A stretch of DNA of 64,000 bases from Salpingoeca rosetta (GCA_033442325.1 JAWQFM010000019.1:979870-1043869), one strand, 5' to 3'. Shown: positions 48,405-56,301, counted from the first letter of the stretch. Translations and numbers: made by a program. The notes: a model not told the origin generated them from the letters alone.

Positions 48405-49157
48405 TGTGTGTATGTGTGTGCATGTGTATGTGTACATGTGTATGTGTGTTGCATGTGCATGTGATGTGTGTATGTATGTATTGCACTTGTGAGTGTTGTT
48501 TTGTCCCTTGCGTTTGAGCCAGGGTGAATGAAAAGGGTTGTGCTTCTGCTCCAAGTGCATGCAGGAAAAAGCCGACAGCAAAAGATCAACGAACCTGCCA
48601 GCACCTCACCACCGTCGCTCATACTCTGCCTCCTATGTTCATTACGAGGACACTCCCATACATTCACACACATGCACACACCCACACACTTACACACTCA
48701 CTCACTCACTCACCCGCACAACAAACACCACGGCTTACGAGTGCAAGGACGAACTGAGCGTTGATGTCCTTTGCCACCTTGGCCATGCCGCTTGCACAGG
48801 CCACCTCTCCCGGCTCCGTGTACGGTGGCGTTGGCTGGCGTTCATTTGACAAACATGGTCGTGGAAGTAGTGGTGGTGCAAGTGAGTTGTCGTGACGTGA
48901 GGAGGTGATGCGATCGGCAGAGGGATCGAAGCGTCAGTGGCATGCAACAGACGCACTTGAAGCCAACCAACCAACAACCCTAACAAAACAATTAAGAGTT
49001 GACGAAGAATGTCATGGTAATCAAACAACACACATGCAAACACAATGCGTACACTGCGCACGTACCTGGCCACCCCAATCGCCGAGCGTCAGGAAGTTAA
49101 GCTCACTGGCACTGGCACTGGCACACACGCCAGCCCACACCAGCAACGCCACACAAA
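46628..49157 (-). CDS. ACP5: Tartrate-resistant/purple acid phosphatase (ACP5 type), body of the gene; start codon displaced by a transposon insertion
   Basis: Metallophosphoesterase motifs GDWGG, GDNFY, AGNHDH, GHYP, CGHDH; signal-peptide remnant CVALLVWAGVCASASAS. No ATG between exon 1 and the TIR at 49158. Confidence 0.9.
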
Positions 49158-49322
49158 GGGCCCGTTCACAGCGAGTAATTGTGATTGCTGGCGAGTATTG
49201 GCGAAACTGGTGGTCGGTGTGCGTTCGTGGCGAGTAATTGTTTTCTGCTGACTCACATGTGCAGCGATTGGCGCGCCGTGTTTGGCGCCAGTTGCCGTTC
49301 GAAGAGAAACCGTCCACTGGAT

Positions 49323-49662
49323 ATGGCGGAGTCTGATGTGTGCTTTGAGTGTGGGGGGAGTTCAACGTACTGCAACGAATGTACACGCTGTTCAAGGGTG
49401 CTTCACAAACAGTGTGCGGCCCTAATGCGCATGCAGCATGGAGCGGTCACGTTGATCTGTGTGCAGTGCATGCAGCCACATGAGGAGGCTCCGGCTGGGT
49501 TCATTCCTCCTTCACGTGAGTGTGTGTGCATGTGCATGTGTGTGCATGTGTGTGCATGTGTGTGCATGTGTGTGCATGTGTGTGCATGTGTGTGCATGTG
49601 TGTGCATGTGTGTGCATGTGTGCATGTGTGCTTGTGCTTGTGCTTGTGCTTGTGCTTGTGAT

Positions 49663-49719
<57 letters not shown>

Positions 49720-51235
49720 ATGTGTGTTGGATCGTTGCTGTTGCAAGTCGTAACTGAGTTGCGTTTCGTGTGTCTGCTTCAGATATCATGGGCTCGTTTC
49801 CGCCTCCCCGCAAACAACCACAAGTGCTTGTCCCGGAAACCCAGGACTCAAGTGCGTCGCAGCGTGTCCAGTCCCAAGGCTCGACCTTCGATGAGACGCA
49901 GTCCCAGGATGGAGACATCATGGCACCCCGGTCTTCGCAAGCTGCGTCTCTTGTGTTTGGAGGACGCCCCCTTCCTCTTTCCCAATCACGGGTGGGCTCT
50001 TCTCGAGCACGAGTGTCTGCTTCTGACTCGCAGGACTCTAATACATCTCGGCGGCGTGTCCAGTCCCAAGGCTCGACCTTCGATGAGACGCAGTCCCAGG
50101 AGGGAGACAGCATGGTACCCCGGTCTTCGCAGGATACAATGAACCCCACCCAATCGTTATTGGCGCCTCGCGAAGAGCCGTCGTCGTCGTCGGCTAAACG
50201 GTCCAAGCGAGCAGGCGGCAACAGGACCAGGGGGAAGGACGCCAATCCCAGGGGCCCGCTGGTATCGTGCCCTATGTGCCCGTGTGCCTCCGTGCATGCC
50301 CGATTGTATGTCTGTGACTTCGTCTGTGTCTGTATAAGTGTGTGTTTCCATGTATGTGCGCGTGCATGCCTGCATTTGGCTGGCCACGCTCTCATGATTG
50401 TGTTCGCTTGCAGATTCCCTGGACCAGGCGTTTTGAGGGGATGACGTTGGACGAGGCGCTTCTGGAGAGAGTGCGCGACCGAGTGTTCACTGTCGGTGGT
50501 CTTTCCAGCATGAGAAATACGGACTGGGTGGGCCATTGCTAACGAGCTCAGTGAGTACGAGACGCTGTGTGCATGTGTGTGTGTGTGNNNNNNNNNNNNN
50601 NNNNNNNNNNNNNNNNNNNNNNNNNNNNNNNNNNNNNNNNNNNNNNNNNNNNNNNNNNNNNNNNNNNNNNNNNNNNNNNNNNNNNNNGGGGGACAGCCAA
50701 CTGCCATTCGATGATGACGATGACTATGATGATGATGAACGCTTTGACGGTGATAGTTGCGGCCTTCGCTACAGCAGCATTGGAGGTGGTGACATGCAGC
50801 ATGGTCGTGGTGACAGCGACGGCGGTGAAGAGAAGGTGCAGCTGGCTCGGTTGATGGGCACTTTTGCCGGCAAAGCATATCTGCTCTTCCCAGGCACACG
50901 CTTCGGTACAGTCGTACATTGGACGCCGACGGGGGTTGTGTGTGTGTGTGTGTGCGTGCGTGTGTGTGTCCTTTGTCTGTGTGTGTGTGTGTGTGTGCCT
51001 TTGTCTGTGTGTGTGTGGGGGGGGGGGGGGGGTTAGCGCCAACTTCTGTCTTCTTATGTGTACTTTGTCAGATCGTTGTTTGACCTCCCACAAACACCGA
51101 AGGTGTTGGGAGAGCGGTGTAGGATTCGAGTTTCTCGAAAGTTCAAGGAACAGTTCAAAGAAGCACGGTTCGCTGTGCAAGCTACTTCATCCTCTGGTTC
51201 GGGATCGCGCCAAGCATCAACGCTCGTGGTACTGC

Positions 51236-51294
<59 letters not shown>

Positions 51295-53571: not shown

Positions 53572-53603
<32 letters not shown>

Positions 53604-54968
53604 ATCATCATCGTCACCGTCGTCACCACAACCCGCTTCCTGTTGAGCCTTTGACAACCTCTCCCTGCGGTGGCGCTTGCGTGCCTCCTTTGCTTGCGTC
53701 TCATCCTGATACAGCTGTTCAACAAAGTCCGCTCCGTCGTCTTTCTGGCGAAGTAGAAAGTTATGCAATGCGCAACACGCGACAATGTACAGCCGCGCTG
53801 TAAAGAAGGTAAGGTTGACAAGGCACGACATGAATGGGCGTACAAATGCAGATAAGTGTGATGACTAGAGCCAACCGTAGCAGGTACAACCGATCATCCG
53901 ACAGCACACGGACAAGAGAATGGGGGGGGGGAGGTTCTCACCTGTATCCTCGCAGGAGGAGAATCCTGTATACAGGATCCTGAATCTTGATTTCAGGATC
54001 CCGAAACAGGCCTCCACACGGGAACGCCTACGAGCGTGCTGGAGGAACAAGGCGCATGTGAGTATCAATGCACGTGTGTGCATGCATTTCAGTGAATGCA
54101 TGTATGCATGTGTGTGCTTGTGTGCATGCATGTGTGTGCTTGTGTGCATGCATGTGTGTGCGTGCGTGCTTGTGTGTGCGTGCGTGTGTGTGCGTGCGTG
54201 CTTGTGTGTGCGTGCGTGCTTGTGTGTGTGCGTATGTGCGTATGTGTGTGCATGTGTGTGTGTGTGCATGTGTGTGTGTGTGCATGTGCGTGTGCATGTG
54301 CGTGTGCATGTGCGTGTGCATGTGCGTGTGTGTTTGTGCACTCATGTGCAGCCGACATGCGTGGACCCTACCATGTAGTTGAATATTTCCTCATCCGACT
54401 GCGGTCCTCCCCGGGACTTGAACGTGTCCAGGTGATAGGTGACTCCACGAATGGGCGTCAGCCATCTACACGCACACGCCCGCGCACACATACGGTGTGA
54501 GGCAACAGGCTTCACCGATTTAAACACCGCACAAACACGATTGACACACACAGACACACACAGACACAAACACACACACAGACACACACAGACACACGCA
54601 TGCACACACTCTCACACACGCATGCACACAGACACACGCATGCACACACTCTCACACACACGCGAGCGGCCACTCACCGTTTATGGGTCAGGCGCATGGC
54701 AGCGTCGAATAGTCCGAAGCTCCCTTCAGGCAGCTTGGAGGTGAGGTCAGCAGTTGCCACGACACTCGCGTCGTGGCAACTGCCCTCACAGCCAACGACG
54801 ACGTGCTGTATCTTTGTGGTGCGATGCGCATCATGGCAGGCTATGAGGTGACCTGGGTCGGTAATTGGCGGCACAGCTTCGCACACACACACACATCGCA
54901 CAGACACATCGCACAGACACAGACACAGAGACACAGACACACACACACACACACAGACAGACAGACAG

Positions 54969-55001
<33 letters not shown>

Positions 55002-56045
55002 GACAGACACACACACACACGCACGCACAAGAACAGCGAACCTGTCTGTCAAACGAGGCGCAAACAAGGACGTTCTGGGACTTGAAGCCCTTTCTGTTTC
55101 GCCAACGCTCCTGTATCGCACACATACACAAGTATGCGCAAGTGCGACGTTGTGGGCACATGCCATGTGTCGGACGTGAGCGGTGTGAGACGAGAGCGGG
55201 CGCTATATGAATGAACGACACGATGGGGACACAGAGCAGAGGCCCAAGCAAGCAGTGGGAATAGAGTACAGGGCACTGTAGGTCATTCACGGACCTCGTG
55301 GCCATTCGTCGTTGGGGTGTATCTGATGTGCACGCCATCGGCAGCCGTGACACAGCCCTCGAGGAAGTCATCCTGAGCCCATCGCCGCTGTTCCTCCTTC
55401 AGCTCTTCCCCAGTTGGAAACGAGATGTTGTCGAGTCCATCGATGATCGCCTTGGCGAACGCGGGGAAGTGCGTACTGCACATGGACTTGCTGATCCCAA
55501 TTGAGAACTGCACAGCCTGAACAAAGCACACGTGCGGAAACAACACGTGAGCGAGGTGGCCAAAGTACCTACGGGAAAGATCAACGACGGGAACAACATG
55601 CAACACGCACGCACCTGAAGAGAGCAGCCGTGAGCAAACATCCACAGCAGGCCGACAAGGACGACGCGATCGGGCACGTCAGTCCCAGGGCGTTTGGGGA
55701 GGTGCGGAGAAATGATATCAAGCAACTCCCAGAACTGATCCTTGGTGACACGGAAGTTCTGGCGAAACGTCTCATTTGGCAAGCCAAAGATGTCCTTCTC
55801 GCGCCTAATGGACGGCAGCACCATCGACAAGAACGAGCGACACACACACACACATACGCGCGCGCGTGTATGAGTATGCGGGAGAGCCATACAACGCAGT
55901 TTGCCATGCATACTGGGATCAAAGCGTACCTCGGAAACGTGCGCTGCTCCCACGACCGTCGTGGCTTGTACTGTGCAGCGACGTAGACGAGTAGACGAGC
56001 AAAGGCGTGGGTACTCGTGGCTGTACCCTCTCCAAACACGCTCAT
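53223..56045 (-). CDS. Harbinger/PIF DDE transposase, about 8 exons
   Basis: MSVFGEG...FPR|[60 protein letters not shown]|[30 protein letters not shown]|[32 protein letters not shown]. The junctions checked are GT-AG and phase-compatible. Confidence 0.93.
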
Positions 56046-56282
56046 ATTGGGGGAAGGTGACAGTTACCGTCCTCAGTTGGCTCGATCGGTGCAACAGGTT
56101 CGACTGACCGTTACCGGACTTCGCACAACCGTCGGCGCCATTACCCCAAATTACCACCCTTTCACAAGTCGGGGGATGGTAATTTGCAAATACGTCGGAT
56201 CAACCAATTACTCCACATTGCGTGGCCGTGAACGCAGTATTCGACCCAAAACTACCCACAATTACTCGCTGTGAACGGGCCC

Positions 56283-56301
56283 AAAGTTGAGTTGTCTTCA
56301 T
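56283..56301 (-). CDS. ACP5: Displaced 5' end (MKTTQL) of the ACP5-type gene
   Basis: Removing 49158-56282 and one AAA copy gives ATG AAG ACA ACT CAA CTT TGT GTG GCG TTG CTG, i.e. MKTTQLCVALLVWAG..., a clean signal peptide in frame with GDWGG. Confidence 0.88.

Follow-up and report, generated by a model that had tools for sequence, protein, structure and literature searches.

The stretch of Salpingoeca rosetta DNA analysed here (64,000 nucleotides, GCA_033442325.1 JAWQFM010000019.1:979870-1043869; "the window" below, with positions counted from its first letter) contains a transposon with two genes, which lies inside the first exon of a gene for an ACP5-type purple acid phosphatase. Among the closest living relatives of animals, S. 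rosetta serves as the principal experimental model. The transposon extends from 49158 to 56282 and measures 7125 bp as assembled, or about 6.8 kb without a gap of 100 N and a foreign piece of 281 bp. Both of its ends were read directly. The left terminal inverted repeat (TIR), GGGCCCGTTCACAGCGAGTAATTGTG, has 26 bp (49158-49183, plus strand), and the right one (56257-56282, minus strand), also of 26 bp, is its exact reverse complement. The perfect TIRs reported in a preliminary description of this DNA, and the in-silico excision given there, thus proved accurate to the base. When the 26-mer was searched in the 55.4-Mb genome with up to 3 mismatches, all eight matches formed inverted pairs (n = 4) with members 6.2-9.1 kb apart, and a reversed-pattern control gave no match, so the repeat is not a product of chance. 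The triplet AAA stands outside each end of the element (49155-49157 and 56283-56285) as a candidate 3-bp target-site duplication (TSD).

The interrupted gene is read on the minus strand. Its detached start consists of 16 bases (56286-56301), ATG AAG ACA ACT CAA C, with the ATG at 56301-56299. On the left of the element the same strand reads (TTT) GTG TGG CGT TGC TGG..., corresponding to CVALLVWAGVCASASASELNFLTLGDWGGQ, and then reaches a GTACGT donor. The rest of the gene, from exon 1b onward, occupies 46628-49154, with exons at 49154-49066 (1b), 48834-48739, 48325-48052, 47793-47638, 47490-47365, 47097-47017, and 46785-46628, separated by GT-AG introns and free of stops and frameshifts. When the element and one AAA were removed conceptually, joining 56301-56283 to 49154 downward, an open reading frame (ORF) of 999 nt was restored, with 7 exons, six GT-AG introns, and a product of 332 amino acids (aa). 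This product begins MKTTQL-CVALLVWAGVCASASAS-ELNFLTLGDWGG... and contains the motifs GDWGG, GDNFY, GNHDH, GGHYP, and GHDH. It is 56-61% identical over 308-329 aa, nearly end to end, to ACP5-like proteins annotated with PF00149, and 56.7% identical to Monosiga brevicollis MONBRDRAFT_30765; exon 3 alone gave a Metallophos match at E 0.004.

The rebuilt protein thus has the full-length similarity and all five metal-ligand motifs (GDxG/GDxxY/GNH(D/E)/xxxH/GHxH) of an ACP5-type purple acid phosphatase. Like ACP5 (tartrate-resistant acid phosphatase type 5), it has about 330 aa, five metallophosphoesterase motifs, and a putative signal peptide before GDWGG; in contrast to ACP5, the S. rosetta start codon and first six codons are split from the remainder of the gene by a transposon. 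The rebuilt N-terminus, MKTTQLCVALLVWAGVCASASAS, follows the n-, h-, and c-region pattern of a putative signal peptide, its exact residues depending on the excision model. Since homologues carry a signal-like N-terminus directly before GDWGG, the ATG at 56301 is supported as the original start. When exon 3 was searched against the genome in six frames, only the window locus matched, indicating a single-copy ACP5-type gene. The preliminary description had placed the insertion in the signal-peptide codons of a purple acid phosphatase gene with all metal-binding motifs kept downstream, and our gene model agrees with it on both points.

The element carries a transposase gene on the minus strand (53223-55824), with an ORF of 1392 nt (463 aa) distributed over 7 exons (55824-55615, 55507-55295, 55110-55042, 54811-54678, 54465-54372, 54038-53942, and 53797-53223) and six GT-AG introns. 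The introns are crammed with CA/GT microsatellites, which accounts for the unusual size of the element, and the C-terminal half of the protein contains a long poly-Asp tail. Candidate DDE residues follow one another in the expected order, in AADGVH of exon 2, in LFDAAM of exon 4, and in a motif of exon 6. Since short exons divide the catalytic domain, Pfam gives weak direct evidence: exon 6 alone matched DDE_Tnp_4 (E 6e-4) and Plant_tran (E 0.018), both below the curated cut-off, and exon 1 alone matched DUF4096 (E 0.005). The spliced protein is 47% identical over 106 aa (E 1.5e-22) to an intron-poor S. rosetta ORF (L014:1238-1942), which itself passes the DDE_Tnp_4 (PF13359) threshold with 36.1 bits against a cut-off of 24.8. 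It also matches S. rosetta PTSG_07057, annotated as a DDE Tnp4 domain protein (E 5e-16), and is collinear with a second intron-bearing Harbinger-like gene on contig C21 (21-38% identity). The PTSG_07057 locus (L014:36-809 and 1238-1942, G000:C12:1011036-1012942) itself looks like a Harbinger-like relic, with 47% aa identity to the transposase family of the window and no introns between exons 4-6; it directly adjoins the integrase/chromodomain ORF of a long terminal repeat retrotransposon.

The TIR opens with the 9 nt GGGCCCGTT, the same as those at the ends of maize ZmPIFa and melon AndroPIF, which places the element with PIF/Harbinger. The published ends are GGGCCCGTTTGTTT for ZmPIFa, with the TSD TTA, and GGGCCCGTTTG for AndroPIF (PMC6327408, PMC11161486). 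On this terminal motif, carried by short and perfect 26-bp TIRs, and on a transposase that can be aligned with DDE_Tnp_4 through the intermediate ORF and has its D/D/E motifs in order, we assign the element to the PIF/Harbinger (PHIS) superfamily only. The Harbinger identity proposed earlier is thus borne out by both ends and an intact transposase gene. The 3-bp TWA duplication that defines the strict PIF/Harbinger group (Han et al. 2015) is absent from all four copies of the element found in the genome, in keeping with the previous remark that AAA is atypical.

Several features are shared with the plant PIF elements ZmPIFa and AndroPIF, namely short TIRs with the same terminal 9 nt, a DDE_Tnp_4-type transposase accompanied by a second gene, and A/T-rich 3-bp flanks; AndroPIF, too, is known from a gene-disrupting insertion (PMC6327408, PMC11161486). 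The differences are equally clear. The host is a choanoflagellate, the flank is AAA instead of TTA/TAA, and three of the four copies show no duplication. Plant PIF elements measure about 3.7-5 kb, whereas the S. rosetta element reaches about 7 kb owing to its microsatellite-filled introns; its transposase has 7 exons and a poly-Asp tail, and its second gene opens with a Cys-rich module and gives no Myb/SANT match. Spy elements, for their part, have one ORF, GGANNNNG ends, and a strict AAA/TTT target (PMC4122938) that is entered without duplication. The S. rosetta element resembles them in its related transposase superfamily, in insertion between A/T triplets, and in the three copies without duplication, but it has two genes, PIF-type ends (GGGCCCGT), and flanks that are A/T-rich without being AAA/TTT, and therefore lies outside the Spy group.

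A survey of transposable elements in S. rosetta listed seven DNA-transposon families, with SrosHar as the sole Harbinger (Southworth et al. 2019, PMC6875170). SrosHar has 3112 bp and 27-bp inverted terminal repeats starting AGAGGATTTCTG, and is single-copy and transcriptionally silent (PMC6875170). It shares with our element the host, the superfamily label, and a DDE_Tnp_4 match (C21:1139255-1139626), but our element has other ends, a length of about 7 kb, and four copies, and it falls outside the SrosHar family as delimited by at least 80% nucleotide identity and the same termini. The SrosHar terminus gave 1 match in the genome, on C21, and none at the four copies of our element; together with the protein name PTSG_07057 [Salpingoeca rosetta] at a related locus, this match identifies the genome as that of S. 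rosetta. The TIR strings of the latter were not found in the supplementary files of the survey (PMC6875170), as far as their possibly incomplete text goes, and the element therefore appears to be an uncatalogued family distinct from SrosHar. The comparison with described Harbinger families that had been proposed thus yields ends like those of ZmPIFa and AndroPIF and unlike those of SrosHar. The SrosHar region of C21 (G000:C21:1139255-1145687, L013) contains three DDE_Tnp_4 matches inside 6.5 kb; one lies within SrosHar on the minus strand, and another, on the plus strand, belongs to the intron-bearing Harbinger-like gene.

The second gene of the element (49323-51795, plus strand, ATG at 49323) is convergent with the transposase gene and has several exons. 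The N-terminal one (49323-49515) is Cys-rich, another is Ser/Gln-rich and contains an internal repeat of 192 bp, and the C-terminal one is coiled-coil-like. A putative Myb/SANT-like stretch lies at about 50420-50550 and resumes from 51072; RNTDWVAIANELK and its continuation, split by an intron, have a Myb/trihelix-like spacing by eye only. The exons, searched singly, matched no Pfam family and no Atlas feature, and from the spacing we infer a possible Myb/SANT nature. Relative to the copy on contig C3, the window copy as assembled has one extra G at 50530-50532 and lacks one A at 50550, resulting in a TAA stop. Both are homopolymer-length differences situated 36-58 bp from the assembly gap, near a contig end, and they may be sequencing errors. 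Within the Ser/Gln-rich exon, an 81-bp stretch occurs twice at a spacing of 192 bp (49859-49939 and 50051-50131, 95% identical); the C3 copy has one extra repeat unit, so the number of repeats varies among copies.

The gap of 100 N (50588-50687) falls into a (GT)n-rich intron of the second gene, on whose left side the (GT)n tract starts 36 nt past the GTGAGT donor. As the intron runs from the donor GT at 50551-50552 to the acceptor AG at 51070-51071, no reading frame crosses the gap. On the right side follows a piece of 281 bp (50688-50968, plus strand) that is 98.9% identical to window positions 43991-44272, 5 kb beyond the phosphatase gene; the two differ in homopolymer length at the extreme edge and in the point of entry into (GT)n. 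In C3 the (GT)n passes straight into the sequence that follows about 50940 in the window, without the 281-bp piece. Because this piece duplicates 43991-44272 and is missing from C3, what stands to the left and to the right of the gap does not form one continuous stretch of the element. The piece is probably a chimeric assembly join through the (GT)n microsatellite and less likely a real capture of nearby DNA. The native stretch at 43991-44272 can be read as an open frame and runs into a (GT)n tract at its end. The element had been called full-length beforehand, which is too generous for a copy whose second gene is interrupted by two homopolymer differences and in which some 280 bp beside the gap are probably not its own. 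Imperfect CA/GT-rich repeats with periods of 8-16 extend over hundreds of bases at 51800-52900 and 54030-54660, where they fill the space between the two convergent genes as well as the transposase introns, and give long spurious ORFs, His/Thr- or Cys/Val-rich, on both strands.

We then compared the copies of the family. There are exactly four, at C3:942216-948405, C6:1955258-1962632, the window locus, and C30:300729-309805. All of them contain assembly gaps, and the window copy is the only one with its transposase gene assembled gap-free. No solo ends or miniature inverted-repeat elements were supported in the genome, where a 14-mer search with one mismatch gave 8 extra matches as compared with 5 in the control. 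Both ends are 99-100% identical among the four copies. The window and C6 copies form a full-type pair with 0 substitutions in 369 positions at the left end, 1 in 1478 at the right end, and identical transposase exons 1-4. Between the C3 and C30 copies there is 1 substitution in 1464 positions at the right end; 1.6% separates them from the first pair. Although they lie on different contigs, C3 and C30 share a deletion of 944 bp with an identical breakpoint (window equivalent 53145-54088), and both have thereby lost exons 6 and 7 of the transposase, together with its catalytic Glu. For such a defective derivative to stand at two loci, transposase must have acted on it in trans, and the near-identity within each pair together with this mobilised derivative indicates recent activity of the family. 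The insertion had been judged very recent before, and the 0-1 substitutions separating the window copy from C6, with the family's signs of recent mobility, lend support to that view.

The 3-bp flanks of the four copies, read in the orientation of the element, are AAA/AAA in the window copy, TTT/GTT in C3, TTC/ATA in C6, and TTT/TGT in C30. They are strongly enriched in A and T (21 of 24 bases, as against 45% in the window, P 1.7e-5); with such a composition, at least one copy in four would match perfectly by chance in about 25% of cases, and 8 of 12 flank positions match (P 0.07). Swapping left and right flanks among the four copies gave no further matches, so scaffold mix-ups fail to explain the pattern. 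With three copies mismatched and a chance match this frequent, a 3-bp duplication is not established for the family. The AAA pair is compatible with a real duplication, yet it provides no evidence for one. Of the AAA TSD proposed in the preliminary description, then, the triplet on each side stands and the duplication does not follow; similarly, the genome-wide TIR search suggested there yielded a copy number of four but no common duplication. Paralogous empty sites were sought for C3, C6, and C30, and none covering a junction was found. We also considered a palindromic 6-bp duplication, GGGCCC, with an element starting from GTTCAC. It fits the four copies, and was ruled out because GGGCCCGTT is the PIF terminal motif, outside of which TTA stands. 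Excision under three models (leaving one AAA, AAAAAA, or AAA-GGGCCC-AAA) keeps the phosphatase in frame every time, and the frame therefore cannot discriminate among them.

These data leave some room, though clearly the smaller share, for the idea that the same element entered the same site with no regular 3-bp duplication, by Spy-like insertion between A/T-rich triplets or by an imprecise duplication. AAA/AAA would then be a coincidence, and the ancestral gene would have read ...CAA CTT TTT TGT..., that is MKTTQLFCVALL. The mostly mismatched, A/T-rich flanks and the frequency of chance matches speak for this idea, as does the fact that PHIS groups differ in target duplication, Spy having none at all (PMC4122938, PMC4482050). 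It is weakened by the small sample (n = 4 copies, all broken by gaps, in a draft with homopolymer-length errors), by the TTA duplication of PIF elements with GGGCCCGTT ends, and by two copies that are only one base short of a match. More speculatively, and in our judgement improbably, a PIF-type element with GGGCCCGTT ends and Spy-like integration between A/T-rich triplets, with little or no duplication, might still be active in S. rosetta, the reference strain being a natural knockout of its only ACP5 phosphatase. If this were true, the native pair of transposase and ORF1 could be used for insertional mutagenesis in S. rosetta.

In order to trace the insertion in public sequencing runs, a 60-mer centred on the junction between left flank and TIR was represented by 3 sampled words, all of them spanning the junction. 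All 3 (1.00) were present in 20 runs from 8 studies, dated 2010-2023, and the adjoining region 46600-49500 was contained at 0.86-0.94 in DNA runs of S. rosetta, again from 8 studies. Four further runs (X37-X40, S. rosetta DNA, 2024-2025) gave 0 of 3 junction words, which is no proof of absence and could reflect either sampling noise or a stock without the left junction. Another run (X12) of one of the samples behind X37-X40 contained 0.88 of the 2.9-kb region. A pattern for the empty site with 0-9 spacer bases, covering the three excision models, was absent from both the assembly and the JGI metagenome contigs. These results show the left junction to be genuine and of long standing in laboratory stocks, where it looks fixed since at least 2010. 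The earlier suggestion that the insertion is possibly polymorphic in culture gains nothing from these results, with the junction words in 8 studies and no empty site in the assembly or JGI contigs; polymorphism is neither shown nor excluded.

The same observations bear on whether the arrangement is an assembly artefact, in which a repeat was scaffolded into the gene while the true locus is uninterrupted. The gaps in all four copies and the doubtful join at 50688-50968 inside the window copy could be taken as hints of this kind. We nevertheless regard it as extremely improbable, for the left-junction 60-mer is complete in 20 runs, which come from 8 studies and cover 13 years; the two flanks, each of them unique, add up to one gene in frame; and no empty-site sequence occurs in the assembly.

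In the present allele, the ATG opens an ORF of only 33 codons, with its stop inside the element at 56200-56202. From the other side, the frame of exon 1b stays open for about 80 codons back into the element, and no in-frame ATG occurs within the 240 nt of the element that precede exon 1b; the next in-frame Met is residue 53, past the first metal-binding motif. A full-length protein of the S. rosetta phosphatase gene was not found in a collection of 5.8 billion proteins, including assemblies of public runs, in which orthologues at 48-61% identity were found, and a 340-aa homologue query returned no S. rosetta protein among its best 120 matches. Viewed by eye, one donor/acceptor pair of cryptic splice sites in the TIRs would add 50 nt and shift the frame.

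We consider it very probable that a PIF/Harbinger-superfamily transposon moved recently into the first exon of the single ACP5-type gene of S. rosetta, leaving a predicted null or strongly reduced allele. An autonomous-type copy would have been inserted by cut-and-paste into codon 6-7, so that 7.1 kb now lie between the ATG with the signal-peptide n-region (56301-56286) and the remaining gene (49154 downward), and function would be lost or strongly reduced unless the element is removed from the RNA. The copy comparison suggests that the insertion is evolutionarily very recent and that the family was recently mobile; a very young insertion would also fit the lack of decay in the downstream exons. 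From the sequence of the present allele we infer a loss of phosphatase function.

A less probable course, to which we give little weight, is that the gene still works, either because the element is tolerated and removed from the pre-mRNA in an enlarged first intron, or because transcription from its left end supplies a usable 5' end. The six downstream exons have remained intact, free of stops and frameshifts, and the insertion has persisted in all stocks since 2010; both would suit a working gene. Moreover, eight of the 20 junction-positive runs, belonging to five studies, are small assemblies of 6-24 M letters, which were guessed to be RNA. If they are RNA, the junction words in them indicate read-through transcription with no precise removal of the element in those molecules, which tells against splicing of this kind. 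The missing in-frame ATG upstream of exon 1b and the absence of a full-length protein, in a collection that does contain the orthologues, tell against a working gene as well, and an intact downstream gene is equally expected of a very young null allele.

The recent, inactivating insertion that we favour must itself be set against four observations that count against it. Transcripts crossing from the element into exon 1b, if the eight small runs are RNA, would leave room for some expression of the downstream exons. Identical 3-bp flanks occur in 1 of 4 copies only, and AAA differs from the TWA typical of PIF/Harbinger. The own-exon Pfam match of the transposase stays below the curated cut-off, since the domain is split over six exons, and superfamily membership is therefore argued from transitive homology and the TIR motif. 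Finally, no Myb/SANT match can be recognised in the second gene, whose window copy is interrupted as assembled.

The published catalogue of S. rosetta describes one silent single-copy Harbinger and little sign of current DNA-transposon activity (PMC6875170). The second Harbinger-type family presented here extends this catalogue, and its two near-identical full-type copies and two copies of a mobilised deletion derivative suggest a recently working transposase. Insertion of a transposon into a gene is an ordinary kind of event, yet the present case indicates that an element has been mobile recently in a model organism. The reference strain is probably without its only ACP5-type secreted or lysosomal phosphatase, which would be relevant for S. 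rosetta work on secretion, digestion, or phosphate metabolism, or wherever its gene set is taken as "wild type". The unusual flank pattern, if confirmed with more insertions, would bear on the variation of duplications in the PIF/Harbinger-ISL2EU-Spy assemblage.

Two observations were made in the neighbourhood of the element copies. A unit of about 157 bp (L009:294-450, G000:C3:942009-942165), 50 bp to the left of the C3 copy, belongs to a dispersed or tandem repeat, with 1753 candidates at first look and at least 71 matches, scored at 74-90% identity, on many contigs. Upstream of the phosphatase start, at window positions 57000-58922 on the minus strand, lies a poly-Gln-rich ORF of 641 aa, whose only database relative is a 504-aa protein of 73% identity from ENA contigs (P0268). 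The best match of phosphatase exon 3 among representative proteins likewise comes from another organism, at 75% identity, and is an ORF of 69 aa with the same exon end (P0001). Both P0268 and P0001 suggest that public environmental assemblies include a fairly close relative of S. rosetta.

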